A stretch of 64,000 nt of DNA, taken from the sequence record PQ898602.1. One strand, written 5' to 3'. This document shows positions 18,201 through 47,989 of the stretch, in pieces. A program made the position numbers and the translations under genes. Within the stretch, counting starts at the first letter, position 1; each line of letters starts with the position of its first letter. Under the pieces are notes generated by a model. That model searched no databases, was not told the DNA's origin, and worked only from the letters and a program-made list of their open reading frames with translations.

Positions 18201-21200
18201 TATGATGCATCTGTTTATACTTCGGAACTACCTTACATTGATTTCTATAGAGCAAATGAAATCCTTGATGCAAGACCAAGAGTAAAAGCTTACGATTTAG
18301 CTGTAGATACTCTATCTCCATTTGAATATAGTGCTAGAACTTTTGAAACTGCAAATGGATCTACTCCATTCTTCCTTTCAAGAGATAAGAATATCAAGGT
18401 ATCTTATGACTATTACCTTGGTAGAATTGATAAGTTATTTGTCAATAGATATGGTGAATTTTTCCTAAAACAGGGTGTTCCTGCACTAAATCCTAGAAAT
18501 CCAGAAGACGTTCCTACTGCTCTAGAGATTGCAACCATTGAGATGCCACCATATGTTTATAACATTAATGACATCACAATTGCACTTACGGATCACAAAC
18601 GCTTCCGAATGCAAGACATTGCAAGAATGGAAGATAGGTTAAAGAACGTTGAGTATTACACTTCCTTGTCTCTTCTTGAAAGTGAAACTAAGAACTTGAC
18701 TCTTAGAGATAGTGCTACTGGTCTTGATAAATTCAAGACTGGATTCTTTGTAGATAACTTCAGAAGTACTTCTGCTGGATCTCTTGGTGATCCTATGCAT
18801 AAGTGTTCTATTGATATGGAAGAGGGTCATCTCAGACCTCAACACTATTCCACACAGATTGACATGCTTCTGGGATCTGAAGCTGTCGTTGGAACTGCAG
18901 ATGGAGCTGCTAATCCTGATGCGGACTTGAGATTTGTTGAACAACTTGGAACTCCAAATTCAGTTAAGAAGGGAGATGTTATCTGTTTCAAGTATAAACA
19001 TGAGAAGTGGTTGGAAAATAAGTTTGCAACCAGATATGAAAATGTCAACCCATTCCACGTTGTCAACTGGATTGGTGCAATTGAGATGAATCCTGCAACG
19101 GATACTTGGATTGATACCAAGAAAACTAAGAAAACTATTGATCAAGAAGGTAACTACGAATCTACCATTCAAGAATTAGGTATTGATACTAATACTGGAC
19201 TTTCCCCAATCCAATGGGGTGCATGGGAAACTACTTGGACTGGTAAGAAGGTTATCGGTAAAAAGAACATGGGTTCTATTAAAGTTGGATCCAAGAAGGT
19301 TGGTACATCTACACATAAAGGAAAACAGATTAAAGGTCGTGGTATTCCCATTACAACTACTACTACATTTAGAGATAAGTATACTAAGTTTACAAATGTC
19401 ACTACTCTTACTACTAAGAAACAAGCTAGAGAGGGTATTCAATACAAAGTGAGTGAAGTATTTGAAACAGTTGAACTGGGTCCAAAGGTAGTTTCTACCG
19501 AAGTTCTCCATACAATGAGATCTAGAAATATTGAATTTGTTGCGAGAAGACTGAAGCCAACTACAAAACTCTTCGCATTCTTCGATAATATCTTAATGAC
19601 GAAGTATGCAGTTCCAAAACTCATCGAAATTCAGATGATTAGTGGAACGTTCCAGGTTGGCGAAGATATTAAAGGTTCTAGTGGAACTCATGCAATTAAG
19701 GCTAGACTTGCGAAACCAAATCATAAGTATGGTCCTTACAAGAAACCATCTCAGACATATACTATTAACCCATACAAGACTGGTCAAAAAATTCCAGGTT
19801 CTTATTCAAGTACTTCTACAATTCTGAACCTTGATACTGCTTCTCTAGAACTTCAATCTGCTTCTGGATATTATGGCAATATCGTGAAGGGTATGAAGAT
19901 TAAGGGTAAAACAAGTGGTGCAATTGCAAAAGTAACTAACGTTAGACTTGTTACTGACAATGCTGGTACTCTAATTGGGTCTCTATTCCTTCCAGATCCA
20001 AAACAAACTTCTAAACCTTCGTTTGAAACAGGAACTAAGACCTTTACTCTTACTACAAGTAAGGAAAATAGTACAATTTCTGGTGCAACCGATAGTACTG
20101 CAGAAAGCACATTTACCGCTTCTGGTACTCTTCAAAATATTGAAGAGACTACGTTGAGAATTAGAAATGCACAAGTTGATAGACTTATTAAGACTGATGA
20201 GAGAACCAAGAAGTCTAAGAGTACTAAACTCAAGGGAACGACCACATTTAAAGATAGAACCGTCAAACAAACAAGATGGGTTGACCCACTTGCACAATCG
20301 TTTGAGGTTCCAGATGAAAGAGGTGTATTCATCTCCAAGATTGAAGTCTACTTTAGAACCAAGGATAAGCAGGGACTTCCTGTTACTGGACAGATCAGAA
20401 CCATGCAAACTGGTCTACCAACCACAGAAATCCTTCCATTCGGTGAAGTAGTTCTTGAACCAGTTGATGTTAAAACTTCAAAGACTGGTACAGTTCCAAC
20501 AACATTTGAGTTCCCATCTCCTGTTTATCTTGAGACTGGTCAATCATATTGTTTCGTTCTTCTGTCTGCATCGAATGAATATACAGTCTTCATCTCTAGA
20601 ATGGGTGAAGAAGATGTGACTACAGTTGATAAACCAGAATCTGAGAAAATTATCGTTTCTTCTCAGCCACTTCTCGGTTCTCTATTCAAGTCTCAGAATG
20701 GTGCAACTTGGGATCCAAGTCAGTTGGAAGACCTTAAGTTCACAGTTTACAGATCCAAATTCAAGACTGGAGAGACTACTTTTAGATTCTATAACCCAGA
20801 TCTCGACTTGGGTAATGGTCAGATTGCAACTCTTAAGAATAATCCTGCGGATTCCATCGCAAGATCTGCGTTGGTTGGTATTGGTACAAGTCTAAGTTCT
20901 GCTGAACAAACGGACTTGACACCTGGTGTAACCATGTTGCAAGAAGCAAATTCTGGATTTAGTGCAACCCTCGATAGTGTAGTTGGTTCTATTGGTATTG
21001 GAAGTGATCTTACTCTAACTGCAGTTGGTTCAGGATTTACTACTCCATATACTGCATATGATAATGTCAGTCTAATTGCAATCACTGGTGAAGGTACTGG
21101 TGGTAAGGTTGAACTTTCAGTACAAAATGGAGTTGCAATTGCCGCGACAGTTTCTGCTGGAGGTACTGGTTATGCTTCTGGTGATGCTCTTACTATCAAC

Positions 21201-25151: not shown

Positions 25152-25158
25152 CTAAATA
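25152..25158 (+). promoter_or_regulatory. Late promoter variant CTAAATA
   Basis: Intergenic, between the 335-aa and 1369-aa genes. Confidence 0.55.
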
Positions 25159-29410: not shown

Positions 29411-32400
29411 ATGACCAAGCAGGTACAGCTAAGACGAGGTTCGCACTCGCAACATTCTACATTTACGGGTGCTGTTGGCGAACCAACTATCGATACAACT
29501 AATGTAGTAATCGTTATCCATGATGGGGTGACCGCAGGCGGTCATAGCATGGTCGGTGAAAAATCTGTCCAAGATATTGTTAATAAACGCACGATTGCGA
29601 TTGGAAAGTCAGAAGCGTCTGATGCACTAGACGCTCAACTGGATGTATTGGGTAATACTTTAGTTTCAGATGATGTTGATACTGGTGGATTAAAAGTTCT
29701 ATACAGAGCTCCTCTAGTAAGAACTGGTTTTACTAGTGCAACCTCAAGTACTCTTGTTACTTTATCGACAGCTACAGATATCAGAGCAGGTTGGGGAGTT
29801 ACTGCTAATAACGTTACTGTTGGTACACAAATTCTAGATGTAGACGTAGCTACAGGAATTGTAACCCTCACTGATTTAACCACAGATTCTACAGTCGAAT
29901 ATTCAGATGTTTACTTTACAGTAGCAAATGGAAGATCTATTAGTGGTATTGCTACTGATAGTTTAGAAGTAGGAGATATTATTGAAGATCCAGATGATCT
30001 CTTATTCTTCAGTGGAACTACAATTTCCGAAATTAGAGACGAAGAAATCATCATCAGTGGAAACACTGCAGGAACTACAACTGGTGTTAGTACCTTTAGT
30101 TGTACTGGTACTGCTGGTGGAACGACTCTTACACTAAGTAATACTTCTAGTTTGAATGATGGAGATCTTCTCCTAGCTGATGAAGTTTTCATTCCAGATA
30201 ATTGTAGTATCGTAACTGTTGATAGTGGCACTCAAATTACAATTAGTGCTGCACTACTTGATAGTGGAACAAACAACGTTGCTTTTGCATCACCAGTAAC
30301 AATCAAACACGTTTCAACTGGTATCGAAGAAGAATACGAATTCTTCTATCCTGATAGTGGTATTGCAACTATCACTAGAGCCTATATTAACGATGCAATA
30401 ATTGATACTCTTAATATCACCACTCTGAATGGTGGCAATCTCCAATTAGAAACTACTACTACCAATCTTGCTAACATCAACGTTGGTATTCATACTTTCG
30501 CATTTATTGGTACCTCATACGTTGATCAAGCAAATCTAAACGTTGCAATTACAACAAGTGCTTTTATTAGTTCTTCTTATATTAGCACTTCCTACGTCAA
30601 TGTTGCAATTACTACTGATGCATTCATCGGTACTGCATTTGTTGACAATGCAAATCTGAACGTTGGTATTCAAACCTTTGCGTTTATTTCGACTTCGTAT
30701 GTTGATGAACAAAATGTAAATCTTGGTCTTGCAACCGACTATACTTTCCAGACTAGTAGAAATATCCTTGGTCTAACTGATGTTGGTATTACTACCACTC
30801 AGTTTACAAATGTAGAATATGTAGATACCGCAAATATTAACCTTGGTATCTCCACTCTTGCAAGAATGTTTGATGCTCTTGCAGATAATATCAACATTGA
30901 CGTTGGTATTGCATCTTACTTCAATGCAGGATTTGCTGGTATTGATACCGCACAAATCAAGACTGGTTTCGGTACATTCTTCAATATCGAGAACTCTACA
31001 ATCGATAGTCTGTTTGTTGCAACAGGTATTGGTTCAACAACATTCTCAAACGAGTCTTATGTAGATCAAGGTTATATCAATGTCGGTATTATGACCGAAG
31101 TTGGTATTACAACCGCTAATATTGATAATGCAAATATCGATGTCGGTATCACTTCCGTAGGATTTGCAAATACAACGTATACAGATCATGAAAATGTAAA
31201 CGTTGGATTTACGACAACTGCATATCTTGATACTGCAAATATTAATGTAGGTATTGGTACAACTGTTGGTATTGCAAGTTTCAGAGCCGAAACTGCGTAT
31301 ATCGATGTTGGTATCGCAACCCAGATGACAGTCACGACTTCGATTGTCTCTGTTGGTCAGGCAACAACCTCCTTTACAGAAGAAGATTACGTTAATCTGT
31401 CCAATGTAAACACTGGGCTCACAACGATGTCCTTTGTTGAGACAGAATATGTCAATCTGTCTAACGTAAATGTTGGTATTGGTACAACTCTATTCCAAGA
31501 ACTTTCTTATACCGATACTGGATATGTAAGATCTGGTATTAACACCTATCTTGATGTAACTGGAATTGGTACAGTTCAAGATCTTAAGGCTGCAGTTGGT
31601 GTTATTACACAACTTACTGGTACCGATCTAAACTACACTGGATTCTCAACTATCGGTCAATTTACTGCAGGTGTTGGTAATACTGATGTTATCGTTGATG
31701 GTGATTTTAGAGTTTCTGGTCTCGTAACCTTTGGTCAAGGTGATGTAACCATTAATGATGATGGTGACCTCTATAATATTGGCACTTTGATGGCACCAGT
31801 TGGTGTTATCACCAATATGTCTGGTACCAACCTCAACTACACTGGTATTTCTACGATTGGTGTTGCATCTGCATCCCAAGTTACCATTACTGGACAAAAT
31901 ACTGCACTTAACCAAGATAAGTCGGTCAGAATCAAACTATCTAATGCAGGTATTGCATCTGACTATGACTTCATCTTACCTTCTAAATTTGGTAGTGCTG
32001 GTCAGTTACTTGCAATTCAAACTGACGGAACACTAGGTTTCACCACGAACGGCGCAGGTCTGTTTGAATCAAGATACTATGTTTCTGAACAGAATGGTTC
32101 TGACACTTTCGATGGTAGGGCACTTCCTGTTGCAACTATTAAGAAGGCAACACAACTTGCATCTTTTGACTCCTTCGTTATTCCTGGTCAGAGATACCTC
32201 GATGCAGGTGACCTGATTGAGAACAACGTAGACTTCATTGTTGAAGAAGCATTTGGTGCTCTAGAATTCAACTATGAGAATCTTACCACTGATTTCCCAG
32301 AATATAATAGAAATAACTGGAAGGATAAGATTGTCCTACTCCTAGAAAACCTCCAGTATGACATTAGATTCGGTGGTAATAGTAAAGCTGTTGAGACCGC

Positions 32401-35400
32401 AAAAGATCTCTATAAGAACGGAATTGAGTATTATGATGGAGAAGAGGTAATTGCAATCTACCTCTACAACTATATTAAGTTCATTGTTCAGTATATTGTA
32501 AATAACCAGACTCCTCCAACTCTTTATGGACCTGGTATTTCCACGACTGGTATTTCTTCTCAGACTCAGTACTTTGATCTGACGATCACTCAAGACCCCG
32601 AGAATACTAATCTCAACTACTTCCATACATCTAAGGATGCAAGAAATCTAATCCTTGCAAACAAACTGGAAATTGTTGATAAGTCTCTTGCAGCAATCGC
32701 TGTTGGTGTTACCAATGGTAATGACTTCTACTTCCCAGGTGATACTCAGAGCAACGAAAGATCTAGATTCTACTCTGCATATCGTCTGATCCAGAAGAAC
32801 AGACAAGAAATCATTGATTATGCATGGGCAGATACCGTTGCAACTTATCCTGGCATTTCTGCTACTGAAGATAAGTGTAAGAGAGACATTGGATATTTTG
32901 TTGACGCAGTTTCTACTGACGTATTCACTGGTGGTAACAACTACGCTAGATCGTTTGTTGGTTTCTACTTTGATAGTGGAGCACCTCTAGGAAATGGACT
33001 TCTCGGTGAAGAGGTTGAATCCAACCATGCATTTACCGAGGCTGCAGTTGGTATGTCTTCGGCACTTACCAACAACTTGACAATTGTTGATAACACCATT
33101 CCTGCTGACCCTGCAACTGGATCCAATACTGATACTGCATCTTGTGCTAACGTAAGATCTACAGTCAATACACTTCTCGGAATTGTTACCACTTCCGTTG
33201 CAGCAGGTTCTACTGCAGGTATTGGTACCACTAGTAACTATGGTTACTTCCTGATCTCCCCAACTCTAAACGTAAGTGATAGTGTTGGTATTGGATCTAC
33301 TAATATCTTCGGTGGTCGTAAGTGTGCAAGAGACCTCAACTACTTTGTTGATACAATTGCACAGGATATTGCTTTCGATAGTAATCAAAATACAATTTAC
33401 AGCACCAAACTATACTTCGATGGTGCAGGTAATCTACTCTCCAATGGTGTTGCTGGAGAACAATTCGAGTCAATACTTGCATTTAATGCATCCAGAGACT
33501 TGATGAAGAAGGCGATCACGAATCAGTTGAATAATCGTGATCTAACCGTTATTGCTGATAACAACACTGGATTTAATACCGATCCAAACTCCTGTTCTAC
33601 AACTCAGACTCAGATCGGTAACCTTGTCGGTATTCTGACTACCGCACTTGATACTGCATCTCTTGCAGGTATCGGTTCTACAAGTTTCGGTATCACAGAT
33701 TGTACTGATGTAAGACAAGCTCTTGTCAACTACATTGGTATTGTCACCGCAGTTATTGGTGCAGGATCTACTGCTGGTTTACCTGAAGTTGTACTACCAG
33801 AAACTCAGTCGAAACCAATTTGTATCTTCGTTGAGGCGGGTAACTACGTTGAAGACAACCCAATGATCGTCTATGATGACGTTGCGATCGTTGGCGACAA
33901 CCTAAGAAACACGATTATCAGACCTGCTAATGCTGGTAAGGACTTGTTCCGTGTTAGAAATGGTTGTTATGTTACTGGTTTCGCGATGAAGGATAACATC
34001 GACGCTGCTGGTGTTCCACAATTTACGTTTAAGAACGCAGTTGCATACGATGATCCTGCAGACCAATTCACTTCCAGAACTGGTTATGCAACGAAACTCG
34101 ATAAACCACTAATCACCAGATCTCCATACATCCAAAACTGCTCGATTCTATCGTTCTTGGGTGGTAATGGTATTCTTGTTGATGGTAACTTGGTTAGATC
34201 TCCAAACTCTCCAATTGTTGCGGAAGAGGCAGAAGTCGATCCAGATAACATTCAACCAGAACAGGGTAAATCCATGGTTGCTGCGGCATTTACCATGGTT
34301 TCCTTCGGTGGTATTGGTTGGCGTGTTATTAACGATGGTTATTCACAGGTTGTTTCCTGTTTCCAAATCTTCTGTAGATATGGTTCTCTAACCCAGTCTG
34401 GTGGTTACCTATCCATTACGAACTCCGCGACCAACTTCGGTCTGTTCGCACTAAGATCTACTGGATTCAGCCCAGCGTCCTTCAAGTTTGATAGAGGTAG
34501 AATTGCAGAGACTGGTACCTCTGGTGGTCTGACAACCCTCAAGGTTGTTGGTCTCGGTAACTCCACTCAGGACCTTTACGTTACAAGATTCTTTGATAAT
34601 GACAACAATGACGTAACCGCTAACTTCAAGACTTCTCCAACAGTTGTCGAGTTCATCGGTGCGGCATCTACTCAAGGTGGTGCAGTTGACCTGAACCTTG
34701 ATCAAATTACTCTAACTGCACACCCATTCCAGAATGGTGATTCTGTCATCTATGAAGGTGACGAACAAGATGTTCCTATCAGAGTTCTGGGTGGTCTGGT
34801 TTCTCAGAACCAGTATTACCTGAAGGTCATTGACGTTAATACAGTTGAGATCTTTGAGGATGATGGTCTTGCAACTAAGGTTAATCTGACCGAAACTACC
34901 ACTGGTATTAACACCTTCAAGAAGAATACTCAAGAATTCTTCGCTAGTGAAGTTCTAACGAGACATAACATCTATCAGAGTCTGACTCTTGCAACTGGAA
35001 TTGGAACAGTCAACTTTGTTTCTGGTAGACAAGTTACTCAGGCAATTTCTGGTGGTACCGCAGTTGGTATCGCACTGACATATAATAATTCATCCAGACA
35101 ACTGGTTGTTTCTGTTGAATTGTCTGGTGATGTTAGAAGAAACTTCCAGGTAACCGATGGTGTTAATAACCTGAATATTTCTTCTCACGATGGATCTCCA
35201 GTTTCCGCTGGTATTACTCAGATCACTGGTATTTCCACATATTGGACAACTAATTCTAAGATTGATTCTACCCTAACTGGTGGCAACATCGTTGGTGTTT
35301 CCAATCTACCCGAAACTTACAAACTACACTTCCACAGACCATCCATTATTAACTCCTCCTCACATACGTGGGAATATTCTGGATCTGGTGTTGACTATAA

Positions 35401-38400
35401 CGCACTACCACAAAACGGCGGTCAGACTGATACCAGTACTGAACAGGTTGCAGAAGGTGGTGGACGAGTCTTCTCCTCTGGTACTAACGAACTGGGTGAC
35501 TTTAAGATTGGTGACTTCATTACTGCGTTCAACAGAACTGGTAACATCATCTTCAACAACACTGTTTCGATTGGTAACTTGGATTCTATCCGACTATCAC
35601 TCTCTGGTGGTGTTGCTGTTGAAGAATTCTCCACAGACCAAGACCTCGGTGATAATGAAATCGGTGGTCCACTGAACAAGAGAGTTTCTACTCAGTTGGC
35701 AGTCAGAGGATTCCTCAACAACAGACTGGGTGGTTTCATCGATAAGAACGTATCTACCAACGCAGTTCCTGGTGCAATTGTCCAGTTGAACAACATTGGT
35801 CAGATCAACCCCGATCTAATTCCACCTAAGACGGTTAACTTCTTCAGATCGAAAGTTGATGATGGAAGAACTCAACTAGTCAACCAGATTCCTGCAGTTA
35901 ATCTACAAACTGGTGACACGGTTGTTGAACCATCCTTCAGTTATGTTCTTGTTACTGACGTTCTGTCTCAGTATCTGATTCTAGATAACGACACCATTTA
36001 TGACTTCAATAATGGTGATGAAGTCAAGGGTACAGTTTCTGATGGTGGTGCAGTTGGTATCGTTACCGCACCTCCTGCAATTGGCATTAACACTGATACA
36101 CTTTCCTTCCCAGAAGTTGGATATGGTTCAACGGGTCTTGTACGTGGTGTTGCATTAACACTAACGAACTTGACTGGTGGTACTGAATATCCTACCGCTG
36201 GTATCTACACGGGCGTCAGACTTGATACCGTCTCTGGTATTGGTACTGGTATTACTGGTGAAGTTACAGTTGGTGGTTCTGGAACAGTTACTTCTCTTGG
36301 TATTAACACTGGTGGTCGCAACTTCGCAGTTGGTGATGTTGTTACACTTTACGACCACTCGGAAGTTGGTGGTGCAGCAGGTGTAGGTACACCATTCACC
36401 GCAACAATCGGTCTTGTCGAAACAAGACTATATCTGAAACTAACCAATAACCAGAAGTTTACTGGTTCTGCTGTATTGACCGACTACATCGCTGACGGAA
36501 ACGCAGTTGCAATCACAACATCTCAGGTTGGTTCTGCAGTATCCTTCACCTTTACTCCAACTGATATTGCAGTTGGTGGTGATATTGACTTCGCTCAGGA
36601 TAGAATCCTTTGTGGTGCAGCAACTGCAGCACTATTCGAGAACGGAGACCCACTCTTCTTCACAGTTGATTCTGGAACTCCAATCTCTCCTCTTGCACTT
36701 GCAGATACTTACTACGTCAAGAAAGTTGGTGTTGGTACTACCGCAATTGAACTTTATACTAACTATGCTCTAACCACCAAGATCGACCTCGATGCATCTG
36801 GTACTGGTACTTCTAACAGACTGACTAGAAGAGCATTCGATGTTGATACAAATCAGATCGTAGTTCCTGCACACGGACTCACACAAGGTGATCCTCTGTA
36901 TGTTGATAAAGTTGGATCTGGAAGTTCCCTACCTACGGGTATTGATACAGGATTCTACTTCGCGGGTTCTATAACCACAAACTCCTTCACTCTACACGAT
37001 TCCAGACAGGACTCCTTGAACTCCATCAACGGACTTCTGTTTGCAACTCAGAACTTCAGTGCAGTAGGTTTCGGAACAGTTTCCTTCACGAAACAGAACG
37101 TCACTTACGAGGCAACAGTTAATACATCTTCTTCGGATGCAACTAACTGGTCCTTGAATGCAAGTTCTTCGATTGACGCATCTAACATCATTAGTGGTAC
37201 AGTTGATCCATCCAGACTTGGTTCTGGTGAGGCAAACACCGATACATTCCTAAGAGGTGATTCTTCTTTCCAGAAGGTAACTACCTCGGTTGGTATTGGT
37301 ACCACACAACCATTCGACGTAACTTCTACTCTAACCACATTCGCGCCTAACGGAGTTGGAATCAACACCTATCAAGGTAAGATTACACTTGGTCTGAATA
37401 GAGTTCAATCTACACTCGATGAGTATTCCACTCTGGGTATTGCTCAATACAAGTTGTCAACGTTTAGCGTTGGTGACGATGGTAGACTTCAAGTCAAGAA
37501 CGCAGCCTCGGGCGGCGATATTGACGCCGCAACCTTCGATGGTAATGGTTCTGCATTCTACCTAGACATCAACAACATTCAGGGTAATATCCCAATCGCT
37601 AGAGGTGGTACTGGTCTCCAGGCACTTCCATCGAATGGCGCAATCCTGATTGGTAATGGTGTTTCTTATGACCTGACCGCAAATCCTGAGTTCGCGGGCG
37701 ATGTTACCTTCTCTGGTGGTAACAATGCAATGGTACTCTCCGCGAACTGCGACTTCGCACTAACGAATAGTGGTACATGGACTGGAGAGAAATCATTTAA
37801 GATTCAGGCATACAACAGCAGTCTATATGCTCAGTATTCCAGTAACTTCATTCTAAGAAACTCTTCTGGTACTAATAGACTTACATTAACAGCCGCGGGC
37901 ACGCTTACGCTCGCGGGCACGGCTAGCATGTCCAGATTGACTCTAACTCAGGCAACTGGTACTGCACCAATGACCATTACGTCCACGACGTTGGTCAGCA
38001 ACCTGAACGCAGATAGAGTTGATAACCTCCACGCATCTTCGTTCCTGAGATCTGACGCGAACGATACCACGACTGGTCAAATCATCTTCACGAAGGCAAA
38101 TAACACTGGAAGTGGTGGCGGTCAGATTTACCTGAATGGTGGTACTGGCAACAGAATTGATTGGAACACCAATGGTGTTGCATCGCCAACCAATACCACC
38201 AGATCTGTTGGTACTAAGTTGGTTCTTTATCCTGCAGTCACCTCAAGCACCGTTGATTACGCACTTGGTATTGCGTCTGGTACACTTTGGTATTCAGTCA
38301 ATAGCACCTCTGCTGCTCATAAGTGGTATGGTGGTACTCAAACGATGATGTCCCTCTCGAGCAATAATCTTGACGTTACTGGAACCGTTAGAGGTACTCA

Positions 38401-39622
38401 GTTCATCTCCGATATCGCTCAAGGAACTGCACCATTCGTTGTTACTTCCACAACCAAGGTCACGAACCTCAACGCTGACCTACTTGATGGATTGAGCACA
38501 TCTTCCACCGCTACAACTGGAAGCAGCGTTGTTACTAGATCCAGTGGTAACTTCAGTGGAAATAACATTACCGCAAATCACTTCATCCGTGGTTCTCAAA
38601 TCGGTAACTCTTCTCTATCGATTTCTACAACTGATGGTGATAATGACTCGCATATTGCGCTTTCACACCCAGGCGGGCAGACATTTGGTATCCTGACATG
38701 GGATGCACAAACTTATCTGACTTCTGGAGTTTATTATAGTAATGGTGCTTGGGTCCACCAGAACTCCAATAATAACAACCAGATGTTTGTTCTGAATCCT
38801 GGTACTGGTGCCAGATGGTTCGCATCTAATAACGGATCTGGTTCTTGGAACGTTTCTTCTAATAAAACACTCTGGAATGACTCGGGCGTATGGCAACAAC
38901 CCCTGAATAGAACTCTAACCATGAACACCAGTGGTAATGGTATTTCTGGTTCTACATCATTCAACAACTCGGGCAATGCAACCTTCACGGTCACATCTAA
39001 CGCGACCTCGAGCAACGCTGTCAACTCGATTGTTTTTAGAAATGGTAGTGGTGATTTCAACGCCAGATATATTACTGCAGAGCGTTTCAGAGTTACTGCA
39101 GATACCAACACCAGACTAGAAAATGATCAATTGATTATTAGAGGTGGTTCACCAACCGTTATCTTCCGCGATACGAACCACAACTCTGGAATGGTCCATG
39201 TCAACTCTAACATCTTCTACGTCCTGCGTGGTGGTAATGATACGGAGTCTTGGACACAGGTCAACAGCGTCTGGCCTCTGCAGATCAACCTCACCAACAA
39301 CAATGCAACGTTTGGTGGAACAGTTACTGCATCGTCTGACGTAAGATTCAAGAAGAACATTACCACAATCGAAGGCGCGCTCGATAGAGTCCTGAGAATG
39401 CGTGGTGTATTCTTCGAGAGACTTGAAACACCTGGTACTGAGTGTGGTGTTATCGCCCAGGAGGTCCAGGAGGTTCTACCTGAAGTTGTTACCGAAACCG
39501 ATGGTGGACATCTGTCCGTCGCATACGGAAACATCTCAGGTCTCCTGATTCAAGCGATCAAGGAACAACAAGAGCAGATCGAAGAACTCCGTGAGGAGAT
39601 CAGAAAACTTAAGGGTGAGTGA
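29411..39622 (+). CDS. Long tail fibre with Mtd_N-like N-terminus, beta-helix domain and C-terminal S74 intramolecular chaperone
   Basis: 3403 aa. N-terminal QVQLRRG....STFTGAVGE.TIDT....IHDGVTAGG. Pectin-lyase-like beta-helix at about 33820-34500. C-terminal SDVRFKKNI..IEGAL..V..MRGV...GVIAQEVQEVLPEVV...VAYGNISGLLIQAIKEQQ plus coiled coil. Confidence 0.9.
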   Translation: MTKQVQLRRGSHSQHSTFTGAVGEPTIDTTNVVIVIHDGVTAGGHSMVGEKSVQDIVNKRTIAIGKSEASDALDAQLDVLGNTLVSDDVDTGGLKVLYRAPLVRTGFTSATSSTLVTLSTATDIRAGWGVTANNVTVGTQILDVDVATGIVTLTDLTTDSTVEYSDVYFTVANGRSISGIATDSLEVGDIIEDPDDLLFFSGTTISEIRDEEIIISGNTAGTTTGVSTFSCTGTAGGTTLTLSNTSSLNDGDLLLADEVFIPDNCSIVTVDSGTQITISAALLDSGTNNVAFASPVTIKHVSTGIEEEYEFFYPDSGIATITRAYINDAIIDTLNITTLNGGNLQLETTTTNLANINVGIHTFAFIGTSYVDQANLNVAITTSAFISSSYISTSYVNVAITTDAFIGTAFVDNANLNVGIQTFAFISTSYVDEQNVNLGLATDYTFQTSRNILGLTDVGITTTQFTNVEYVDTANINLGISTLARMFDALADNINIDVGIASYFNAGFAGIDTAQIKTGFGTFFNIENSTIDSLFVATGIGSTTFSNESYVDQGYINVGIMTEVGITTANIDNANIDVGITSVGFANTTYTDHENVNVGFTTTAYLDTANINVGIGTTVGIASFRAETAYIDVGIATQMTVTTSIVSVGQATTSFTEEDYVNLSNVNTGLTTMSFVETEYVNLSNVNVGIGTTLFQELSYTDTGYVRSGINTYLDVTGIGTVQDLKAAVGVITQLTGTDLNYTGFSTIGQFTAGVGNTDVIVDGDFRVSGLVTFGQGDVTINDDGDLYNIGTLMAPVGVITNMSGTNLNYTGISTIGVASASQVTITGQNTALNQDKSVRIKLSNAGIASDYDFILPSKFGSAGQLLAIQTDGTLGFTTNGAGLFESRYYVSEQNGSDTFDGRALPVATIKKATQLASFDSFVIPGQRYLDAGDLIENNVDFIVEEAFGALEFNYENLTTDFPEYNRNNWKDKIVLLLENLQYDIRFGGNSKAVETAKDLYKNGIEYYDGEEVIAIYLYNYIKFIVQYIVNNQTPPTLYGPGISTTGISSQTQYFDLTITQDPENTNLNYFHTSKDARNLILANKLEIVDKSLAAIAVGVTNGNDFYFPGDTQSNERSRFYSAYRLIQKNRQEIIDYAWADTVATYPGISATEDKCKRDIGYFVDAVSTDVFTGGNNYARSFVGFYFDSGAPLGNGLLGEEVESNHAFTEAAVGMSSALTNNLTIVDNTIPADPATGSNTDTASCANVRSTVNTLLGIVTTSVAAGSTAGIGTTSNYGYFLISPTLNVSDSVGIGSTNIFGGRKCARDLNYFVDTIAQDIAFDSNQNTIYSTKLYFDGAGNLLSNGVAGEQFESILAFNASRDLMKKAITNQLNNRDLTVIADNNTGFNTDPNSCSTTQTQIGNLVGILTTALDTASLAGIGSTSFGITDCTDVRQALVNYIGIVTAVIGAGSTAGLPEVVLPETQSKPICIFVEAGNYVEDNPMIVYDDVAIVGDNLRNTIIRPANAGKDLFRVRNGCYVTGFAMKDNIDAAGVPQFTFKNAVAYDDPADQFTSRTGYATKLDKPLITRSPYIQNCSILSFLGGNGILVDGNLVRSPNSPIVAEEAEVDPDNIQPEQGKSMVAAAFTMVSFGGIGWRVINDGYSQVVSCFQIFCRYGSLTQSGGYLSITNSATNFGLFALRSTGFSPASFKFDRGRIAETGTSGGLTTLKVVGLGNSTQDLYVTRFFDNDNNDVTANFKTSPTVVEFIGAASTQGGAVDLNLDQITLTAHPFQNGDSVIYEGDEQDVPIRVLGGLVSQNQYYLKVIDVNTVEIFEDDGLATKVNLTETTTGINTFKKNTQEFFASEVLTRHNIYQSLTLATGIGTVNFVSGRQVTQAISGGTAVGIALTYNNSSRQLVVSVELSGDVRRNFQVTDGVNNLNISSHDGSPVSAGITQITGISTYWTTNSKIDSTLTGGNIVGVSNLPETYKLHFHRPSIINSSSHTWEYSGSGVDYNALPQNGGQTDTSTEQVAEGGGRVFSSGTNELGDFKIGDFITAFNRTGNIIFNNTVSIGNLDSIRLSLSGGVAVEEFSTDQDLGDNEIGGPLNKRVSTQLAVRGFLNNRLGGFIDKNVSTNAVPGAIVQLNNIGQINPDLIPPKTVNFFRSKVDDGRTQLVNQIPAVNLQTGDTVVEPSFSYVLVTDVLSQYLILDNDTIYDFNNGDEVKGTVSDGGAVGIVTAPPAIGINTDTLSFPEVGYGSTGLVRGVALTLTNLTGGTEYPTAGIYTGVRLDTVSGIGTGITGEVTVGGSGTVTSLGINTGGRNFAVGDVVTLYDHSEVGGAAGVGTPFTATIGLVETRLYLKLTNNQKFTGSAVLTDYIADGNAVAITTSQVGSAVSFTFTPTDIAVGGDIDFAQDRILCGAATAALFENGDPLFFTVDSGTPISPLALADTYYVKKVGVGTTAIELYTNYALTTKIDLDASGTGTSNRLTRRAFDVDTNQIVVPAHGLTQGDPLYVDKVGSGSSLPTGIDTGFYFAGSITTNSFTLHDSRQDSLNSINGLLFATQNFSAVGFGTVSFTKQNVTYEATVNTSSSDATNWSLNASSSIDASNIISGTVDPSRLGSGEANTDTFLRGDSSFQKVTTSVGIGTTQPFDVTSTLTTFAPNGVGINTYQGKITLGLNRVQSTLDEYSTLGIAQYKLSTFSVGDDGRLQVKNAASGGDIDAATFDGNGSAFYLDINNIQGNIPIARGGTGLQALPSNGAILIGNGVSYDLTANPEFAGDVTFSGGNNAMVLSANCDFALTNSGTWTGEKSFKIQAYNSSLYAQYSSNFILRNSSGTNRLTLTAAGTLTLAGTASMSRLTLTQATGTAPMTITSTTLVSNLNADRVDNLHASSFLRSDANDTTTGQIIFTKANNTGSGGGQIYLNGGTGNRIDWNTNGVASPTNTTRSVGTKLVLYPAVTSSTVDYALGIASGTLWYSVNSTSAAHKWYGGTQTMMSLSSNNLDVTGTVRGTQFISDIAQGTAPFVVTSTTKVTNLNADLLDGLSTSSTATTGSSVVTRSSGNFSGNNITANHFIRGSQIGNSSLSISTTDGDNDSHIALSHPGGQTFGILTWDAQTYLTSGVYYSNGAWVHQNSNNNNQMFVLNPGTGARWFASNNGSGSWNVSSNKTLWNDSGVWQQPLNRTLTMNTSGNGISGSTSFNNSGNATFTVTSNATSSNAVNSIVFRNGSGDFNARYITAERFRVTADTNTRLENDQLIIRGGSPTVIFRDTNHNSGMVHVNSNIFYVLRGGNDTESWTQVNSVWPLQINLTNNNATFGGTVTASSDVRFKKNITTIEGALDRVLRMRGVFFERLETPGTECGVIAQEVQEVLPEVVTETDGGHLSVAYGNISGLLIQAIKEQQEQIEELREEIRKLKGE
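30470..31550 (+). repeat. Pentapeptide-period protein repeat array in the tail fibre
   Basis: ANINV GIHTF AFIGT SYVDQ ANLNV AITTS AFISS SYIST..., a 5-residue register with about 20-residue super-repeats. Confidence 0.75.
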
Positions 39623-41968: not shown

Positions 41969-43024
41969 ATGTTAGGAACTTATTATTACCACGAAATTTT
42001 GAGGAAAACCATTGTAGCCTTTGGTACCCTCTTCAATGACATTGAGATCAAACATAGAAACAATGCAGGTGGGGACTTTAGTATTATCAAAGTTCCCATT
42101 GCATATGGACCTGTTCAAAAGTTTCTAGCAAGAATCGAACAATCTCCTAATGTAAGAAAGGAAGTTGCGATTACTTTGCCTAGAATGTCATTTGAAATGA
42201 CTGGATTATCTTATGATCCTTCTAGAAAGTCTTCGACAATGCAGACTTTCAAAGCAATTGATAAAACTTCCAAGAATGCGACAAAGGTATTGATGCCTGT
42301 CCCATACAACATGAGTATGAGACTTTCTATTCTGTCAAAACTCAACGAGGATGCGTTGCAGATTATTGAACAGATTCTTCCAATATTCCAACCACACTTT
42401 AATATAACTGTTGATCTTGTTTCTACCATTGGAGAAAAAAGAGATATTCCAATTACTCTCAATGGTATCACTATGGATGATCAATATGAAGGAGATTTTA
42501 CAACTAGAAGAGCACTGACATATACCCTAGATTTTACAGTTAAAACTTACTTGTTCGGTCCAGTCGCAAGTTCTTCCGATGGTCTCATCAGAGAGGTTCA
42601 GGTTGACTATCATGGAGATCCTGTCAATCGTAAGAATTCTTCTAGAATGCTCAGATACAAGACTGAGGTCAGAGCAATCAAAGACTACGATAGTGACGAA
42701 ACAACTACGATCACCGAGGATCTTAACATCAGAGAAACTGCTATTGATCTGACTTATGCAGGTCAACTAGTAGAGGGTGCATACATCCAAATCGATTCCG
42801 AATCGATGAGAATTAAATCCATCACTGGAAATCAACTATTGGTTGAAAGAGGTGCAGATGGTACAACTATTGCAGAACACGCAGCAGGTACCGCAGTCAA
42901 CGTCATCGATAATAGAGACGATATTCTCATCTCTCTTGATGATGAATTTGGTTTCAGTGAGTATCGTTATGAATACGATAGTGATGGAAAAGTTTTCAGT
43001 CCAAGTAAGGGTCAAGACGTATGA
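41969..43024 (+). CDS. g15: Tail sheath stabiliser/completion protein gp15
   Basis: 351 aa. YYYHEILRKTIVAFGTLFNDI, VPIAYGP.QKFLARI, ITLPRMSFE and RDIPI.L motifs. Confidence 0.93.
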   Translation: MLGTYYYHEILRKTIVAFGTLFNDIEIKHRNNAGGDFSIIKVPIAYGPVQKFLARIEQSPNVRKEVAITLPRMSFEMTGLSYDPSRKSSTMQTFKAIDKTSKNATKVLMPVPYNMSMRLSILSKLNEDALQIIEQILPIFQPHFNITVDLVSTIGEKRDIPITLNGITMDDQYEGDFTTRRALTYTLDFTVKTYLFGPVASSSDGLIREVQVDYHGDPVNRKNSSRMLRYKTEVRAIKDYDSDETTTITEDLNIRETAIDLTYAGQLVEGAYIQIDSESMRIKSITGNQLLVERGADGTTIAEHAAGTAVNVIDNRDDILISLDDEFGFSEYRYEYDSDGKVFSPSKGQDV

Positions 43025-43452
43025 ATTTTGAAGACATCGACAAGGCTTTAGATATTGAGAGTAAACCAGTAGAAACTGAAGTTGTAAAGAAAGAGAAAAA
43101 ACCTGAAATTAAAAAAGTTCACTCTCAGGAGGAACAGATTCAGAAAGATTATGAATATACTCGTGGAAACCTTTACTCTATTATTGAAAAGGGTCAAGAA
43201 GCTATCGATGGTATTTTAGAACTTGCACAGGAATCAGACTCTCCTAGAGCATATGAAGTTGCAGGTCAGTTGATCAAGAGTGTTGCAGATTCAACTGATA
43301 AATTGATGGATCTTCAGAAGAAATTGAAGGATGTCAATAAAGAAGAAAAAGGTGCAACACCTACTAACGTTACTAATAACGCCGTATTTTTGGGTTCAAC
43401 TGCAGAGTTACAAAAGTACTTAAAGAGTTCAATGAAACCCGATACTAAATAA
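43021..43452 (+). CDS. g16: Terminase small subunit gp16
   Basis: 143 aa. DYEYTRGNLYSIIEKGQEAI..ILELAQESDSPRAYEVAGQLIK and NNAVFLGSTAELQK. Confidence 0.92.
   Translation: MNFEDIDKALDIESKPVETEVVKKEKKPEIKKVHSQEEQIQKDYEYTRGNLYSIIEKGQEAIDGILELAQESDSPRAYEVAGQLIKSVADSTDKLMDLQKKLKDVNKEEKGATPTNVTNNAVFLGSTAELQKYLKSSMKPDTK
43445..43451 (+). promoter_or_regulatory. Late promoter CTAAATA for the 724-aa gene operon
   Basis: Overlaps the g16 3' end, about 26 nt upstream of the ATG at 43478. Confidence 0.65.
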
Positions 43453-43477: not shown

Positions 43478-45652
43478 ATGGAAAGGCTTTCTTTTAAAGA
43501 GTGGCAAGTTCTGTCCGACCTAGAAGTACTCGATTCTATTCCCGAGGATTTCGAGTTTGCAATGGCTCGTGGAGAACTCAAAACTATCAAGAGATCTGTT
43601 GATAGAATCATGAAGCACCTCGGCGGCGAAGGTGATCTAGAGGCATGGGTTCAGTCTAAAATTACCAAGGCTAATGATTATCTGAATAGTGTCTCCAACC
43701 ACATGGATGGTGGTGAAGATGATACTAAGAAAGAAGTAAAAGAAGGTAAGTCAAAGTGCGACTGCGATTGTGGTAAGGTTCCTTGCGTAGAGTGTGGTGG
43801 TGATCATCACAAAAATGAACTCAAGGAAGAGAAGTGTGGTGATGGAATGTATTACTGCAAGACCAGTAAGAAGTGTAAGAAGATCCCCAAGGGTCATCGT
43901 GTCGGTAAAGACGGAATGCTTGTAAAGGGTGTCCGTTGGCAGGATTCGGATGGCGATGGTAAGTGGTACGAACCAGGTGATGATGTCTCTGAAGGCGTTA
44001 TGCCAGAACCCATTGATCCTAAGAAGCACAGGGATGCACAAAAGAAACAAAAGATGAGGAATCTTGCCATCGGCAATGAGAATCCTAATGAGAAGAAAGT
44101 TGCAGAAAAGAAAGCAGGCGGACCCAAGATGATTGGTGAAGGTGCAGTAGAAGATCTAGAAAAGGGAATGGAAACTCTTAAGTCCATTACCTATGATTCT
44201 ATTGATGGTCTGATGAAGAGAATCGCAGAAGATCATGACATCTCTACGACCAAACTTCATTACATGTTTAAAGCAAAGCATGACATGACACCCGATGATT
44301 GGGCAGAGAAGAATCTCAAAGAAGAAATGTCTAACTGGAGACAGGACTTGGATGAGAAGTGCTGGAAGGGTTATGAGAAGAAAGGTATGAAGACCATGTT
44401 TGGTAAGAGATATCCAAACTGCGTCAAGAAAGAAGAAGTTGAACAGATTCAGGAAAAACCAGGTGATGGTTATCTTGGACCAACAATGAAAGTAGGTGGT
44501 TCTGAAGTTGGTGTTCCCAACCCTATTCGTATTGCTAAGGATGCTGCAGATAATACAAACAGGGCAAACCAAAGAAAGGTAGATGCAGTTAAAGCTCATG
44601 GCGGAACCGCATCAATGCCTCCATACAAACTCCATAACAAACAAACTAGTAAAGCTAGTCAAACACTTTTTGGAATGCAGAAGCAGTCCTATGAACCACA
44701 AGGTGAGGTAATCGGTGAAGAAGGTGATAACAAAGTTACACCAATTAATAAAAAGAAGAGGATGGATGCTAAGAAGCAAGCCACCAAAGATATGAGTAAA
44801 GAACCATATGATACCAATACTGCTAGAAGGAGGGCTAAGGGTCAAGGGATCCTGGATAATCTGCTGGGAAAGCCCCCAACGACTGAAGAAGTCGTTTTAG
44901 AAAAGAGAGATGGTAAATCTGCCAAGTCCAAGGGTTATTCCCTCCGTGACTGGTTCAAAGGTGGTGGATGGGTACAAGCAGGTGGTAAGTACGATGGAAA
45001 ACCATGTGCAAAGCAACCAGGTCAAACCACAAAACCTTTCTGTCGTGATGCAGACGATCGTGCTGCAATGACTAAAGACGAGAGGGAAAAGAGAGCTGCA
45101 AAGAAACGCAGAGAAGATCCAAATCCAGAAAGAAAGGGTAAGGCAAAGATCGTCACCGCAGAGGAAGTAGTTGCCGAAAAGAAAGATGCTTGCTATCATA
45201 AGGTCAAATCACGTTACTCCGTGTGGCCTTCTGCATATGCATCTGGTGCTCTAGTCAAGTGTCGCAAAGTCGGTGCAAAGAACTGGGGCAACAAAACCAA
45301 AAAAGAAGGTTATGAATTTTCTGATTGGAGAGATGATTTCAAACCAACAGAAATTCAATCATTCGACATCGTAAAGGCAGAACCTCTGGTTGATGTTAAT
45401 TCCATCACCGAACCCGTACAATTGGCAACAGAAGATTATCAAAGACTACAATCTACTGGTAACGTTTTCTGTATAATGCTAACGTGGAGAGGTCAACCTT
45501 ATAAGGTGCAACTTTTCTTCCCAGGTGGGTCTAGACCTTCCAGAGAAGAAGTCAAGGGTGAAGTAGATAAACTTTATCCTGGTGCAGTAATCTCGCATTA
45601 CTATCCAGCTCCTACTGACCCCACTCAACCAATTGTAGTTATTCAGAGGTAA
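43478..45652 (+). CDS. Modular Lys/Cys-rich hypothetical protein (candidate internal head polyprotein)
   Basis: 724 aa made of short modules (AWVQSKITKA; KCWKGY..KG.K...GK..PNCVK; SLRDWFK..GWVQ; DACYHKVK.RY.VWPSAYASGALVKCRK) separated by [ILV]-x-E motifs. Confidence 0.8.
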   Translation: MERLSFKEWQVLSDLEVLDSIPEDFEFAMARGELKTIKRSVDRIMKHLGGEGDLEAWVQSKITKANDYLNSVSNHMDGGEDDTKKEVKEGKSKCDCDCGKVPCVECGGDHHKNELKEEKCGDGMYYCKTSKKCKKIPKGHRVGKDGMLVKGVRWQDSDGDGKWYEPGDDVSEGVMPEPIDPKKHRDAQKKQKMRNLAIGNENPNEKKVAEKKAGGPKMIGEGAVEDLEKGMETLKSITYDSIDGLMKRIAEDHDISTTKLHYMFKAKHDMTPDDWAEKNLKEEMSNWRQDLDEKCWKGYEKKGMKTMFGKRYPNCVKKEEVEQIQEKPGDGYLGPTMKVGGSEVGVPNPIRIAKDAADNTNRANQRKVDAVKAHGGTASMPPYKLHNKQTSKASQTLFGMQKQSYEPQGEVIGEEGDNKVTPINKKKRMDAKKQATKDMSKEPYDTNTARRRAKGQGILDNLLGKPPTTEEVVLEKRDGKSAKSKGYSLRDWFKGGGWVQAGGKYDGKPCAKQPGQTTKPFCRDADDRAAMTKDEREKRAAKKRREDPNPERKGKAKIVTAEEVVAEKKDACYHKVKSRYSVWPSAYASGALVKCRKVGAKNWGNKTKKEGYEFSDWRDDFKPTEIQSFDIVKAEPLVDVNSITEPVQLATEDYQRLQSTGNVFCIMLTWRGQPYKVQLFFPGGSRPSREEVKGEVDKLYPGAVISHYYPAPTDPTQPIVVIQR

Positions 45653-45657
45653 TTTAA

Positions 45658-45825
45658 ATGGACGACAAAATCGAACTCTCAAACTTAAGTAAAGCGCTCG
45701 AGTTTGAGAAACAATCTAGGGAAATTGATAAAATGACTCTAACTGAAGCGAGAGAGTTCGCAAAGTCCTACCTCAAACTTTACTTCAAGCAACAAGAAGT
45801 AGTAATGTCAATCGCAAATATGTAA
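45658..45825 (+). CDS. 55-aa NblA-like protein (possible phycobilisome degradation adaptor), not in the ORF track
   Basis: Manual translation: MDDKIELSNLSKALEFEKQSREIDKMTLTEAREFAKSYLKLYFKQQEVVMSIANM. GAGGT Shine-Dalgarno at 45646-45650. Exactly fills the gap between neighbouring genes. Aligns by eye in register with cyanobacterial NblA. Confidence 0.55.
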   Translation: MDDKIELSNLSKALEFEKQSREIDKMTLTEAREFAKSYLKLYFKQQEVVMSIANM

Positions 45826-45826
45826 G

Positions 45827-46102
45827 ATGAATGTAGTAAAAATCCTAGGCACGTCAACCCAGGTTAATGCAGGGTCTGGATCATCAGTTCCTAATGGAGA
45901 TGGTATTGGTGCAGAATATGTAATGATTCAACATAGTCACTCTTCTGATCGTGTAATTGAAGTTAGAACAGGTGCTGGCGTAACATATGGAAGTTTTCAT
46001 ATGGCTGGAAATAATCCCATCATTATACATAAACAAAGAGACGAGTTAGTTTATTCATCTGCAGCTGATGTATATGCAACTTCGGTAGCACATATGGGAT
46101 AA
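45827..46102 (+). CDS. Small hypothetical protein upstream of the terminase
   Basis: 91 aa, beta-rich. Starts 1 nt after the upstream stop and ends 7 nt before g17. Confidence 0.75.
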   Translation: MNVVKILGTSTQVNAGSGSSVPNGDGIGAEYVMIQHSHSSDRVIEVRTGAGVTYGSFHMAGNNPIIIHKQRDELVYSSAADVYATSVAHMG

Positions 46103-46109
46103 TTTTTTT

Positions 46110-47759
46110 ATGACTGATCAGGTATATCTTGGTAACCCCAATCTGAAAAAAGCCAACGTTGCAGTTGAGTTTACTCAGGAACAGGTTATTGAATTTATTA
46201 AGTGCAAAGAGGATCCCGTTTATTTTGCAAAAAACTACATCAAGATCGTTTCTCTTGATGAAGGTGAGATCCCCTTTAACATGTATAAGTTCCAAGAAAA
46301 ATTAATTGAGAACTTCCATAATAATAGATTTAATATCTGTAGAATGCCTCGACAGACGGGTAAGTCCACTACATGTGTGTCTTACCTTTTGCATTATGCA
46401 GTGTTTAATGATAATGTAAATATTGCAATTCTTGCTAACAAAGCTTCCACCGCACAGGACCTTCTCGGAAGGTTACAATTTGCGTATGAGAAGTTACCTA
46501 AATGGATGCAACAGGGTATTGTATCTTGGAACAAACGATCGCTTGAACTGGAGAATGGATCAAAGATTATCGCCGCGTCTACTTCTGCATCTGCTGTCCG
46601 TGGTGGCTCCTATAATGTCATCTTTCTGGACGAGTTCGCATTCATCCCGAATCACATTGCTGATGACTTCTTTGCCTCTGTTTATCCTACTATCTCGTCA
46701 GGTAAGTCTACAAAAGTCCTAATCGTTTCTACCCCTAAGGGTATGAACCACTTCTACCGCATGTGGCATGATGCGGAGAAAGGGAAGAACGAATATATTC
46801 CAACTGATGTCCATTGGTCTGAAGTCCCAGGTAGGGATGCGAAGTGGAAAGCACAGACCATTGCAAACACATCTGAACAACAATTCAAGGTTGAGTTTGA
46901 GTGCGAATTCCTTGGATCTGTTGATACTCTGATCTCAGCACCTAAGTTGAGGTCGATGACTTATGACGATCCAATCAAGAGAAACGCAGGGTTGGACGTT
47001 TATAAGGAACCAATTAAAGATCACAACTACATCATGACTGTTGACGTTGCTCGTGGTGTAGAAAAAGATTACTCAGCATTTACCATTTTTGATACGACAG
47101 AATTTCCATATCAACTTGTAGCAAAATATAGGAACAATCAAATCAAACCGATGTTGTTCCCAAACATCATTAAAGATGTTGCAATATCATATAATAGAGC
47201 ATTCGTTTTAGTTGAAGTTAATGACCTAGGAGAACAAGTAGGTCAGATTCTTCATATGGATCTCGAATACGATAATATCCTGATGTGTTCCATGAGAGGG
47301 CGTGCGGGTCAGATTGTTGGTCAAGGATTCTCTGGTAAAAAATCCCAGATGGGAGTCAAGATGTCCAAGACTGTCAAAAAGACAGGATGCATGAATCTCA
47401 AGACTCTGCTTGAAGATGATAAACTTATTATTAACGACTACGATATTATTAGTGAACTAACTACTTTCATTCAAAAGTCAAATTCATTTGAAGCGGAAGA
47501 TGGATGTAACGACGACCTTGCAATGTGTCTAGTTATTTTTGCATGGTTGGTCATGCAAGATTATTTCAAGGAGATGTCCGATCAGGATGTCCGTAAGAGA
47601 ATCTATGAAGATCAGAGGGATCAAATTGAAGCAGACATGGCACCATTTGGATTCATCTCTGATGGTTTAGAAGGTGGAGAAAGTTTTATAGATGAGAATG
47701 GTGATAGATGGCATATGGATGAATATGGTGATCAATCATATATGTGGGAGTTCAACTGA
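46110..47759 (+). CDS. g17: Terminase large subunit gp17
   Basis: 549 aa. YLGNPNLK, MPRQTGKST Walker A, VIFLDEFAF Walker B, VSTPKGMNHFY, VDVARGV.KDYSAF and DDLAMCL nuclease motifs. Confidence 0.98.
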   Translation: MTDQVYLGNPNLKKANVAVEFTQEQVIEFIKCKEDPVYFAKNYIKIVSLDEGEIPFNMYKFQEKLIENFHNNRFNICRMPRQTGKSTTCVSYLLHYAVFNDNVNIAILANKASTAQDLLGRLQFAYEKLPKWMQQGIVSWNKRSLELENGSKIIAASTSASAVRGGSYNVIFLDEFAFIPNHIADDFFASVYPTISSGKSTKVLIVSTPKGMNHFYRMWHDAEKGKNEYIPTDVHWSEVPGRDAKWKAQTIANTSEQQFKVEFECEFLGSVDTLISAPKLRSMTYDDPIKRNAGLDVYKEPIKDHNYIMTVDVARGVEKDYSAFTIFDTTEFPYQLVAKYRNNQIKPMLFPNIIKDVAISYNRAFVLVEVNDLGEQVGQILHMDLEYDNILMCSMRGRAGQIVGQGFSGKKSQMGVKMSKTVKKTGCMNLKTLLEDDKLIINDYDIISELTTFIQKSNSFEAEDGCNDDLAMCLVIFAWLVMQDYFKEMSDQDVRKRIYEDQRDQIEADMAPFGFISDGLEGGESFIDENGDRWHMDEYGDQSYMWEFN

Positions 47760-47989
47760 TGGATATTGAAGACCAGTTTGAACTTGGTCATCTATTTTTA
47801 GCGCAGAGAACTTGTAGAAGTTGCGGTCAAACTAAAGACTTATTAGATGGATTTTACCTGACGAGAAAGAGTAGAGGCAGTCTGCCATCTGCATATTCAT
47901 ATGAATGTAAAGTCTGTACTATTGATAGGATTACTAAGAGAAGACGTGTTGCAAGAGACCATACACGTTGGGAATATCCTGACTGGTAA
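47759..47989 (+). CDS. Small CxxC...CxxC zinc-finger protein
   Basis: The likely start is the ATG at 47759 (TGATG overlap with g17, GGGAG Shine-Dalgarno), giving 76 aa. RTCRSCGQTK...FY...YECKVC motif. Confidence 0.72.
   Translation: MDIEDQFELGHLFLAQRTCRSCGQTKDLLDGFYLTRKSRGSLPSAYSYECKVCTIDRITKRRRVARDHTRWEYPDW

Follow-up and report, generated by a model that had tools for sequence, protein, structure and literature searches.

A short gene between the terminase genes of S-SCSM2R

The window analysed here, a stretch of 64,000 nucleotides from sequence record PQ898602.1, belongs to Synechococcus phage S-SCSM2R (100% identity). Between the genes for the small and large terminase subunits it carries a short gene, ORF118, whose 55-residue product is probably a divergent member of the NblA superfamily and may act as an adaptor in the breakdown of antenna proteins by Clp. 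An earlier sequence-only reading had described a complete open reading frame (ORF) at this place, preceded by a GAGGT motif; the peptide is exactly as quoted there and the coordinates agree, with the start codon ATG at 45658 and the stop codon TAA at 45823-45825 on the + strand.

45658..45825, + strand: 55-aa NblA-like gene (S-SCSM2R ORF118, SSCSM2R_118), member of phrog_27081; from the ORF listing, the GenBank coding sequence (CDS) 'NblA' and the PHROG match
45646..45650, + strand: Shine-Dalgarno-like GAGGT, read in the sequence, 7 nt 5' of the ORF118 ATG

The gene is also as tightly packed as had been described, lying between the 724-aa gene and the gene before gp17. The GAGGT motif and the stop codon of the 724-aa gene (TAA, 45650-45652) overlap, and 1 base separates the stop of ORF118 from the ATG of the next gene (45827).

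The description of the ORF as uncalled holds for the scan track, which had a 60-aa threshold, but not for GenBank, where PQ898602.1 already gives it as CDS SSCSM2R_118 with the product 'NblA'. The S-SCSM2R genome paper, whose annotations required an HHpred probability >90%, names 'nblA (ORF118)' as one of twelve genes related to photosynthesis (PMC12801897). The gene is already known, annotated and published as nblA for S-SCSM2R, and therefore adds no new kind of system. What is new here is the calibrated strength of the nblA annotation, which is moderate and below all curated thresholds; the placement of the family in two fixed slots within late gene modules; and the finding that the clade located between g16 and g17 is alone detectably NblA-like. 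In PHROGs v4, true NblAs (those of Ma-LMM01 and the Nostoc plasmid copy) form phrog_23930 and the myoviral family forms phrog_27081; both are labelled 'unknown function', so that PHROG-based annotation misses phage nblA altogether.

ORF118 is conserved and under purifying selection

ORF118 matches the phrog_27081 profile at E 1.3e-15, with residues 3-52 on positions 4-54 of 59. Relatives were found by tblastn in 22 phage records, comprising T4-like Kyanoviridae, the S-TIM5 group and the siphovirus S-SKS1, and IMG/VR holds at least 578 stretches that encode one; among 1.84 billion proteins, a search with the profile yielded 229 clusters at 50% identity (E<=0.001). Compared with five relatives at 82-87% amino acid identity, the proportion of non-synonymous differences (pN) is 0.10-0.14 and that of synonymous differences (pS) is 0.67-0.81, giving a ratio of non-synonymous to synonymous substitution rates (dN/dS) <=0.08. 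ORF118 is thus under strong purifying selection. ORF118 and 35 relatives have in common an invariant motif, K40-L41-Y42 + Q45-Q46-E47 (36-sequence alignment), which is absent from true NblAs; the C-terminal tail varies across the family.

These data refute the view that ORF118 is a chance open frame without a product. Its shortness (55 aa, under the 60-aa calling threshold of the scan) would suit such a view, but hundreds of contigs keep the ORF, dN/dS stays at <=0.08 with saturated synonymous sites, a Shine-Dalgarno site and tight packing lie on the coding strand, and the AlphaFold2 model reaches a predicted local distance difference test (pLDDT) score of 93. The conservation and selection evidence leaves this explanation with practically no probability.

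Remote homology to NblA

The reference set for homology consisted of 10 true NblA/ycf18 proteins from plasmids of Nostoc, Chroococcidiopsis and Acaryochloris and from Microcystis phages. For widening this set, the matches listed from the big protein search were almost all Nostoc-like, and a scan of IMG/VR gave just two diverse NblAs. With heuristic filters off, the hidden Markov model (HMM) of the true NblAs ranked ORF118 first among the 138 ATG-started window ORFs of 40-120 aa, at 15.3 bits and E 1.2e-4, the next ORF scoring 1.7 bits. When the same HMM was applied to the 1417 ORFs of all collected phage loci, family members took all of the top 13 places and the best decoy scored 9.7 bits.

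Profile-profile comparison points the same way. hhalign was re-run with match columns set by the first sequence and with shuffled controls, and the 36-sequence family profile scored 26.0 against the NblA profile (P 5.3e-5, probability 66.7%), compared with a mean of 10.1, a standard deviation of 2.5 and a maximum of 19.6 for 200 column-shuffled NblA profiles, and 11.6 for the reversed profile. With two further viral NblAs in the NblA profile, the probability was 76.6% (P 2.2e-5) and the score up to 27.6. The profiles align over residues 1-40, and under permissive settings over 49 columns, to residue 54, with a 4-residue insertion in helix 2. At the level of single sequences, BLASTP aligned ORF118 with the NblA of Ma-LMM01 at 45% identity over 31 residues (pairwise E 5e-6), with IDKMTL.EAR as the common stretch. 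In addition, the S-SCSM1 paper reported HHpred results of 95.5% to the NblA of Nostoc PCC 7120 and 95% to that of S. elongatus for ORF237, which is 55% identical to ORF118.

The AlphaFold2 single-chain model of ORF118 has a mean pLDDT of 93.3 and predicts helices at residues 10-24 and 28-54 with a 3-residue loop between them. A true NblA control, modelled likewise, has helices at residues 9-23 and 27-53, again with a 3-residue loop.

45685..45729, + strand: codons of predicted helix 1 (residues 10-24, 15 residues); AlphaFold2
45739..45819, + strand: codons of predicted helix 2 (residues 28-54, 27 residues), bearing K40-L41-Y42 + Q45-Q46-E47; AlphaFold2, 36-sequence alignment

As modelled, ORF118 has the size and the helix-loop-helix of NblA (~54-65 aa; short helix 1, longer helix 2). 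A Foldseek search of the model against PDB and BFVD gave nothing below E 3, but this negative carries no weight because the true NblA model likewise retrieved no NblA structure.

Because the profile-profile score exceeds the shuffles, the HMM gives ORF118 its top rank, the predicted helix-loop-helix matches and a published HHpred result agrees, ORF118 can be called NblA-like at a remote level, and its status as a remote NblA homologue has moderate support from sequence and model comparisons. The NblA-like identity proposed in the sequence-only reading is upheld to this extent, but not by curated models or signature residues (see below). The Nostoc NblA string given in that reading agrees with PDB 1OJH.

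Two kinds of longer protein contain NblA-like units. P0017 (4001-4405 on both L103 and L104) is a protein of 134 aa with two such units in tandem; it occurs on at least four independent metagenome contigs, beside genes for tail-fibre (Peptidase_S74), HNH, peptide deformylase and Band_7 proteins. As a natural 'covalent dimer', this tandem duplicate is in keeping with a protein whose working form is dimeric. In P0051 and P0071, an NblA-like unit is fused to a phrog_3426 domain of ~70 residues and of unknown function, C-terminal in the former and N-terminal in the latter, for which no Pfam or PDB sequence match was obtained.

L055:3907-4308, L063:1240-1641, L089:3986-4387: phrog_3426-domain fusions (proteins P0051, P0071)

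Family distribution and gene slots

A total of 93 homologous loci were classified by tblastn with the neighbouring genes of the window: 62 fall into one slot (slot A), 23 into another (slot B) and 8 elsewhere. Both slots belong to the late modules of T4-like cyanophages. Slot A precedes gp13 and follows the genes for a giant, VrlC-like structural protein and for a small virion protein; slot B, the arrangement seen in the window, lies between gp16 with the 724-aa gene and gp17. The two-slot loci are window positions 45658-45825 plus L004, L005, L008, L010, L012-L091 and L099-L102. Median scores with the true-NblA HMM are 9.5 bits for slot B versus 0.2 for slot A. Within the slots, the gene often overlaps or abuts the adjacent genes. 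On the S-TIM5, S-SKS1, S-B43, DSL-LC03 and P0017 contigs, its surroundings are small accessory or metabolic genes and not structural ones.

The family is patchy, being present in 22 phage records as against ~460 records of T4-like cyanophages that have a close gp17. This patchiness over unrelated lineages (T4-like, S-TIM5-like and the siphovirus S-SKS1) corresponds to the pattern of an accessory, host-directed gene and not of a core virion gene. ORF118 is not among the 23 listed S-SCSM2R virion proteins (PMC12801897), and the S-SCSM1 record flags neighbouring ORFs, but not the nblA ORF, as virion proteins.

A scan of genome contigs for host copies, made with one peptide pattern which divergent picocyanobacterial NblAs could therefore escape, returned four phage contigs in metagenome-assembled genomes (MAGs) and no cyanobacterial genome. 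These four (L099, L100, L101 and L102) are T4-like cyanophage contigs with gp13-gp17 and a VrlC-like gene in GTDB species-representative MAGs labelled Acetobacteraceae, Crocinitomicaceae, Methanobacteriota and Pirellulaceae, into which they were probably mis-binned. Host association was also considered as a clue and set aside: all 22 records come from Synechococcus hosts, but this is uninformative because Prochlorococcus phages make up ~5% of T4-like cyanophage records.

In the window, slot B is bordered and filled by the following genes.

43021..43452, + strand: gp16, small terminase subunit, left slot border (PF11053 E 3.9e-12; phrog_445 E 4.3e-54)
43478..45652, + strand: 724-aa Lys/Cys-rich hypothetical protein, upstream of ORF118 (ORF listing, GenBank)
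45827..46102, + strand: 91-aa hypothetical gene (phrog_18571), downstream of ORF118 (ORF listing, PHROG match, GenBank)
46110..47759, + strand: gp17, large terminase subunit, right slot border (PF03237 E 1.3e-22; PF17289 E 4.4e-11)

The wider flanks hold gp15 (PF16724) and gp16 on one side and gp17, an endonuclease VII-like gene and the sheath gene gp18 on the other, so that the gene had correctly been described as embedded in a DNA-packaging operon. The 724-aa protein, encoded between gp16 and the NblA-like gene, is Lys-rich with a Cys-rich stretch; it has no Pfam match and is matched piecewise by PHROGs of unknown function (phrog_727, 3477, 10346 and others). Most of the 23 loci in slot B keep its C-terminal part upstream of the family gene, wherever the upstream sequence suffices, and its gene is probably co-transcribed and translationally coupled with ORF118. 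The small endonuclease VII-like gene (47744-47989; phrog_4723 E 3.7e-36) overlaps the end of gp17. In GenBank it bears the name 'PacI protein' and has its start at 47759. Upstream of the neck genes lie three giant ORFs on the + strand, at 1222-13641, 15276-22793 and 29411-39622, which encode 4139, 2505 and 3403 aa. The virion proteome of S-SCSM2R includes two large 'exoproteins', ORF104 and ORF112 (PMC12801897), to which the giant ORFs may correspond.

Expression signals

The nearest late-promoter-like motif upstream of ORF118 stands ahead of the 724-aa gene.

43445..43451, + strand: CTAAATA, late-promoter-like motif of the T4 type, 26 nt ahead of the 724-aa gene's start codon

CTAAATA occurs six times in the window (25152, 29367, 41937, 43445, 48031 and 56928), always on the + strand and with a gene start ~25-185 nt downstream. 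The canonical T4 late promoter TATAAATA was not found near ORF118; its sites in the window are at 24070, 39639 and 54247, all on the + strand, and sites of TATAAATA and ATAAATA are similarly placed ahead of gp13, gp20 and other genes. Most late-promoter-like motifs stand ~25-50 nt upstream of late gene starts, those at 25152 and 56928 being further off. Total counts of the late motifs in the window are not above shuffled expectation, so the case for late promoters is one of placement alone. Between 43451 and 45658 there is no terminator-like site on the + strand; scans for sigma-70-like promoters and for terminators were at chance level.

Late co-transcription of ORF118 from the CTAAATA at 43445 is plausible on these grounds. 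The late promoter which had been proposed there is placed like the other CTAAATA motifs upstream of late genes; that it is active, we infer.

Weighing the NblA assignment

Our preferred reading, to which we give a probability of about 0.6, is that ORF118 is a divergent NblA-superfamily adaptor that would promote Clp-dependent breakdown of antenna proteins. Several observations weigh against it, beginning with curated models. A search with the Pfam NblA model, the check suggested in the sequence-only reading, came out negative: ORF118 has no PF04485 match even at E<=10, just one of 13 relatives has one (E 0.029), and the 25 families listed for the representatives of 74 clusters do not include PF04485. 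The NCBIfam scan was empty for ORF118, whereas true NblA controls match NF045916, and the family-alignment profile found no NblA chain and no match at E<=10 among PDB sequences. Default hhalign runs over ~30 columns gave 4% with a ragged 74-sequence alignment and 21% with the 36-sequence family alignment against the NblA alignment. PHROGs, moreover, puts true NblAs in a separate family (phrog_23930), and the median score of the whole family with the true-NblA HMM is 0.8 bits, the g16-g17 clade with ORF118 being alone detectable (median 9.5).

The same applies to individual residues. The invariant or nearly invariant NblA residues E10, Q11, R16, D20, K53 and W56 are unmatched in ORF118, and the positions that do align are mostly hydrophobic (including L7, F14, I23 and V48) plus K40. 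NblA is reported to bind ClpC by an N-terminal motif and phycobiliproteins by a C-terminal one (PMC4103541). Within the N-terminal motif, L7, L10 and F14 of ORF118 align with L7, L9 and F13 of NblA, and E10, Q11 and R16 are replaced by S, K and E. At the other end, the 55-residue protein stops before, or at, the K53/W56 region, and it has no clear equivalent of these residues, the register of helix 2 being ambiguous (hhalign and BLASTP pick different offsets). Judged from these alignments, neither the ClpC-binding nor the phycobiliprotein-binding motif appears evidently conserved. The genomic setting adds two further points: 85 of the 93 loci lie inside late virion or packaging modules, and the nblA of S-TIP37 is expressed with DNA-metabolism genes, before morphogenesis.

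Such differences could mean that the fold is derived from NblA and the job is another one. ORF118 might be a Clp adaptor for non-phycobiliproteins or, a role suggested by a C-terminal phycobiliprotein-binding motif that is not evidently conserved, a heterodimerising modulator that changes or blocks host NblA. The homology evidence (HMM rank, hhalign, shuffled controls) serves this explanation equally, and the unmatched K53/W56 region and polar N-terminal signature of true NblAs favour it, as does the family's own invariant motif (K40-L41-Y42 / Q45-Q46-E47), which true NblAs lack. S-SCSM2R also infects Prochlorococcus (PMC12801897), which is mostly without phycobilisomes. Moreover, the NblA of S-TIP37 also causes proteins outside the phycobilisome to be degraded, and nblA occurs in Prochlorococcus phages. 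However, nothing points directly to another target, the lengths of the helices fit NblA, as do the hydrophobic positions L7, F14, I23 and V48, and marine NblAs in general diverge strongly from the freshwater consensus and are still active. We consider a different job unlikely.

Extended to the family, phrog_27081 could be a re-purposed NblA-derived hairpin that has other Clp targets, acts on host NblA or serves as an assembly factor. The late-module slots, the KLY..QQE motif of its own and the apparent lack of a canonical phycobiliprotein-binding end suggest such re-purposing, to which we assign a low probability. If true, the published 'nblA' label would be functionally misleading, and other Clp targets would be relevant to a phage whose hosts include Prochlorococcus without phycobilisomes.

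The location of the family raises yet another explanation, in which ORF118 is a small helical hairpin for morphogenesis or packaging, such as an assembly chaperone of its large structural neighbours or a terminase or neck accessory, and its likeness to NblA is convergence between short amphipathic hairpins. The occupation of two fixed late-module slots by 85 of 93 loci, often overlapping or abutting their neighbours, is what such a protein would lead one to expect; curated NblA models miss ORF118, and most family members score ~0 bits with the true-NblA HMM. But a packaging role fits poorly with the absence of the gene from most T4-like cyanophages (22 records versus ~460 with a close gp17), with its accessory or metabolic surroundings in S-TIM5, S-SKS1, S-B43, DSL-LC03 and the P0017 contigs, and with the virion data, since the reported virion proteome of S-SCSM2R does not list it and, in the S-SCSM1 record, the neighbouring ORFs bear a virion flag that this one lacks. 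The similarity to NblA, furthermore, exceeds all 200 shuffled controls and the reversed one. This explanation is in our view quite unlikely.

Under the preferred reading of ORF118 as an NblA-type adaptor, the gene would encode a phage-specific, 55-residue helix-loop-helix protein, most likely dimeric, that works as a proteolysis adaptor during infection. It would be transcribed together with the late packaging genes from the CTAAATA at 43445, its translation probably being coupled to that of the 724-aa gene. The protein may then link the phycobiliproteins of the host, and perhaps further host proteins, to the ClpC-ClpP protease, and the degraded antenna protein would supply amino acids for phage production. 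Dimerisation, binding of ClpC and phycobiliproteins, antenna degradation and late timing are the steps that we infer in this scheme.

Comparison with known systems

The closest counterparts of ORF118 are the NblA-like proteins of other cyanomyoviruses, including S-SCSM1 ORF237 (QFG06501.1), that of S-TIM5 (AEZ65625.1) and those of Bellamy, S-SM2, S-SRM01 and further phages. As members of phrog_27081 with 40-55% full-length identity, they measure 54-66 aa and have the same invariant K-L-Y...Q-Q-E; the S-SCSM1 copy was annotated nblA from HHpred evidence. The g16-g17 clade of ORF118 differs from the other relatives in a loop one residue shorter and a noticeably higher similarity to canonical NblA, and most cyanomyovirus relatives, unlike ORF118, lie upstream of gp13 or in accessory-gene regions.

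Canonical NblA/Ycf18 (PF04485; 1OJH, 2Q8V, 2QDO, 3CS5) resembles the predicted ORF118 protein in its length of ~55-65 aa and its succession of a 15-residue helix, a 3-residue loop and a 27-residue helix; the hydrophobic positions and the I/V-D/Q-x-M loop entry match as well. In contrast, ORF118 falls below every curated threshold and is without the polar LSLEQxFxLR signature and the C-terminal YxxLLKxxW region, and full-length hhalign needs a 4-residue insertion in helix 2. The ORF118 family also differs in that it was seen on phage contigs only and, in the one-pattern scan, in no cyanobacterial genome.

Among phage-borne NblAs, those of the freshwater Microcystis myoviruses Ma-LMM01 and MaMV-DC give the best pairwise match to ORF118. 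The Ma-LMM01 protein is, unlike ORF118, a clear PF04485 member with a host-like source and an N-terminal extension, and its gene adjoins nrdA among genes described as early-expressed. The NblA of the T7-like phage S-TIP37 is the sole marine phage NblA with knockout evidence. Like ORF118, it is encoded by an accessory gene of a marine Synechococcus phage, and its role, antenna degradation and faster infection, is the one proposed for ORF118. It falls, however, into another sequence group, and no search that started from ORF118 retrieved it; its gene is expressed before the morphogenesis genes, whereas ORF118 lies in the late packaging cluster. Viral NblA in a T7-like phage speeds infection and cuts light harvesting of marine Synechococcus (PMC12695635). 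If the family found in T4-like cyanophages acts alike, this ecological effect would reach another abundant phage group.

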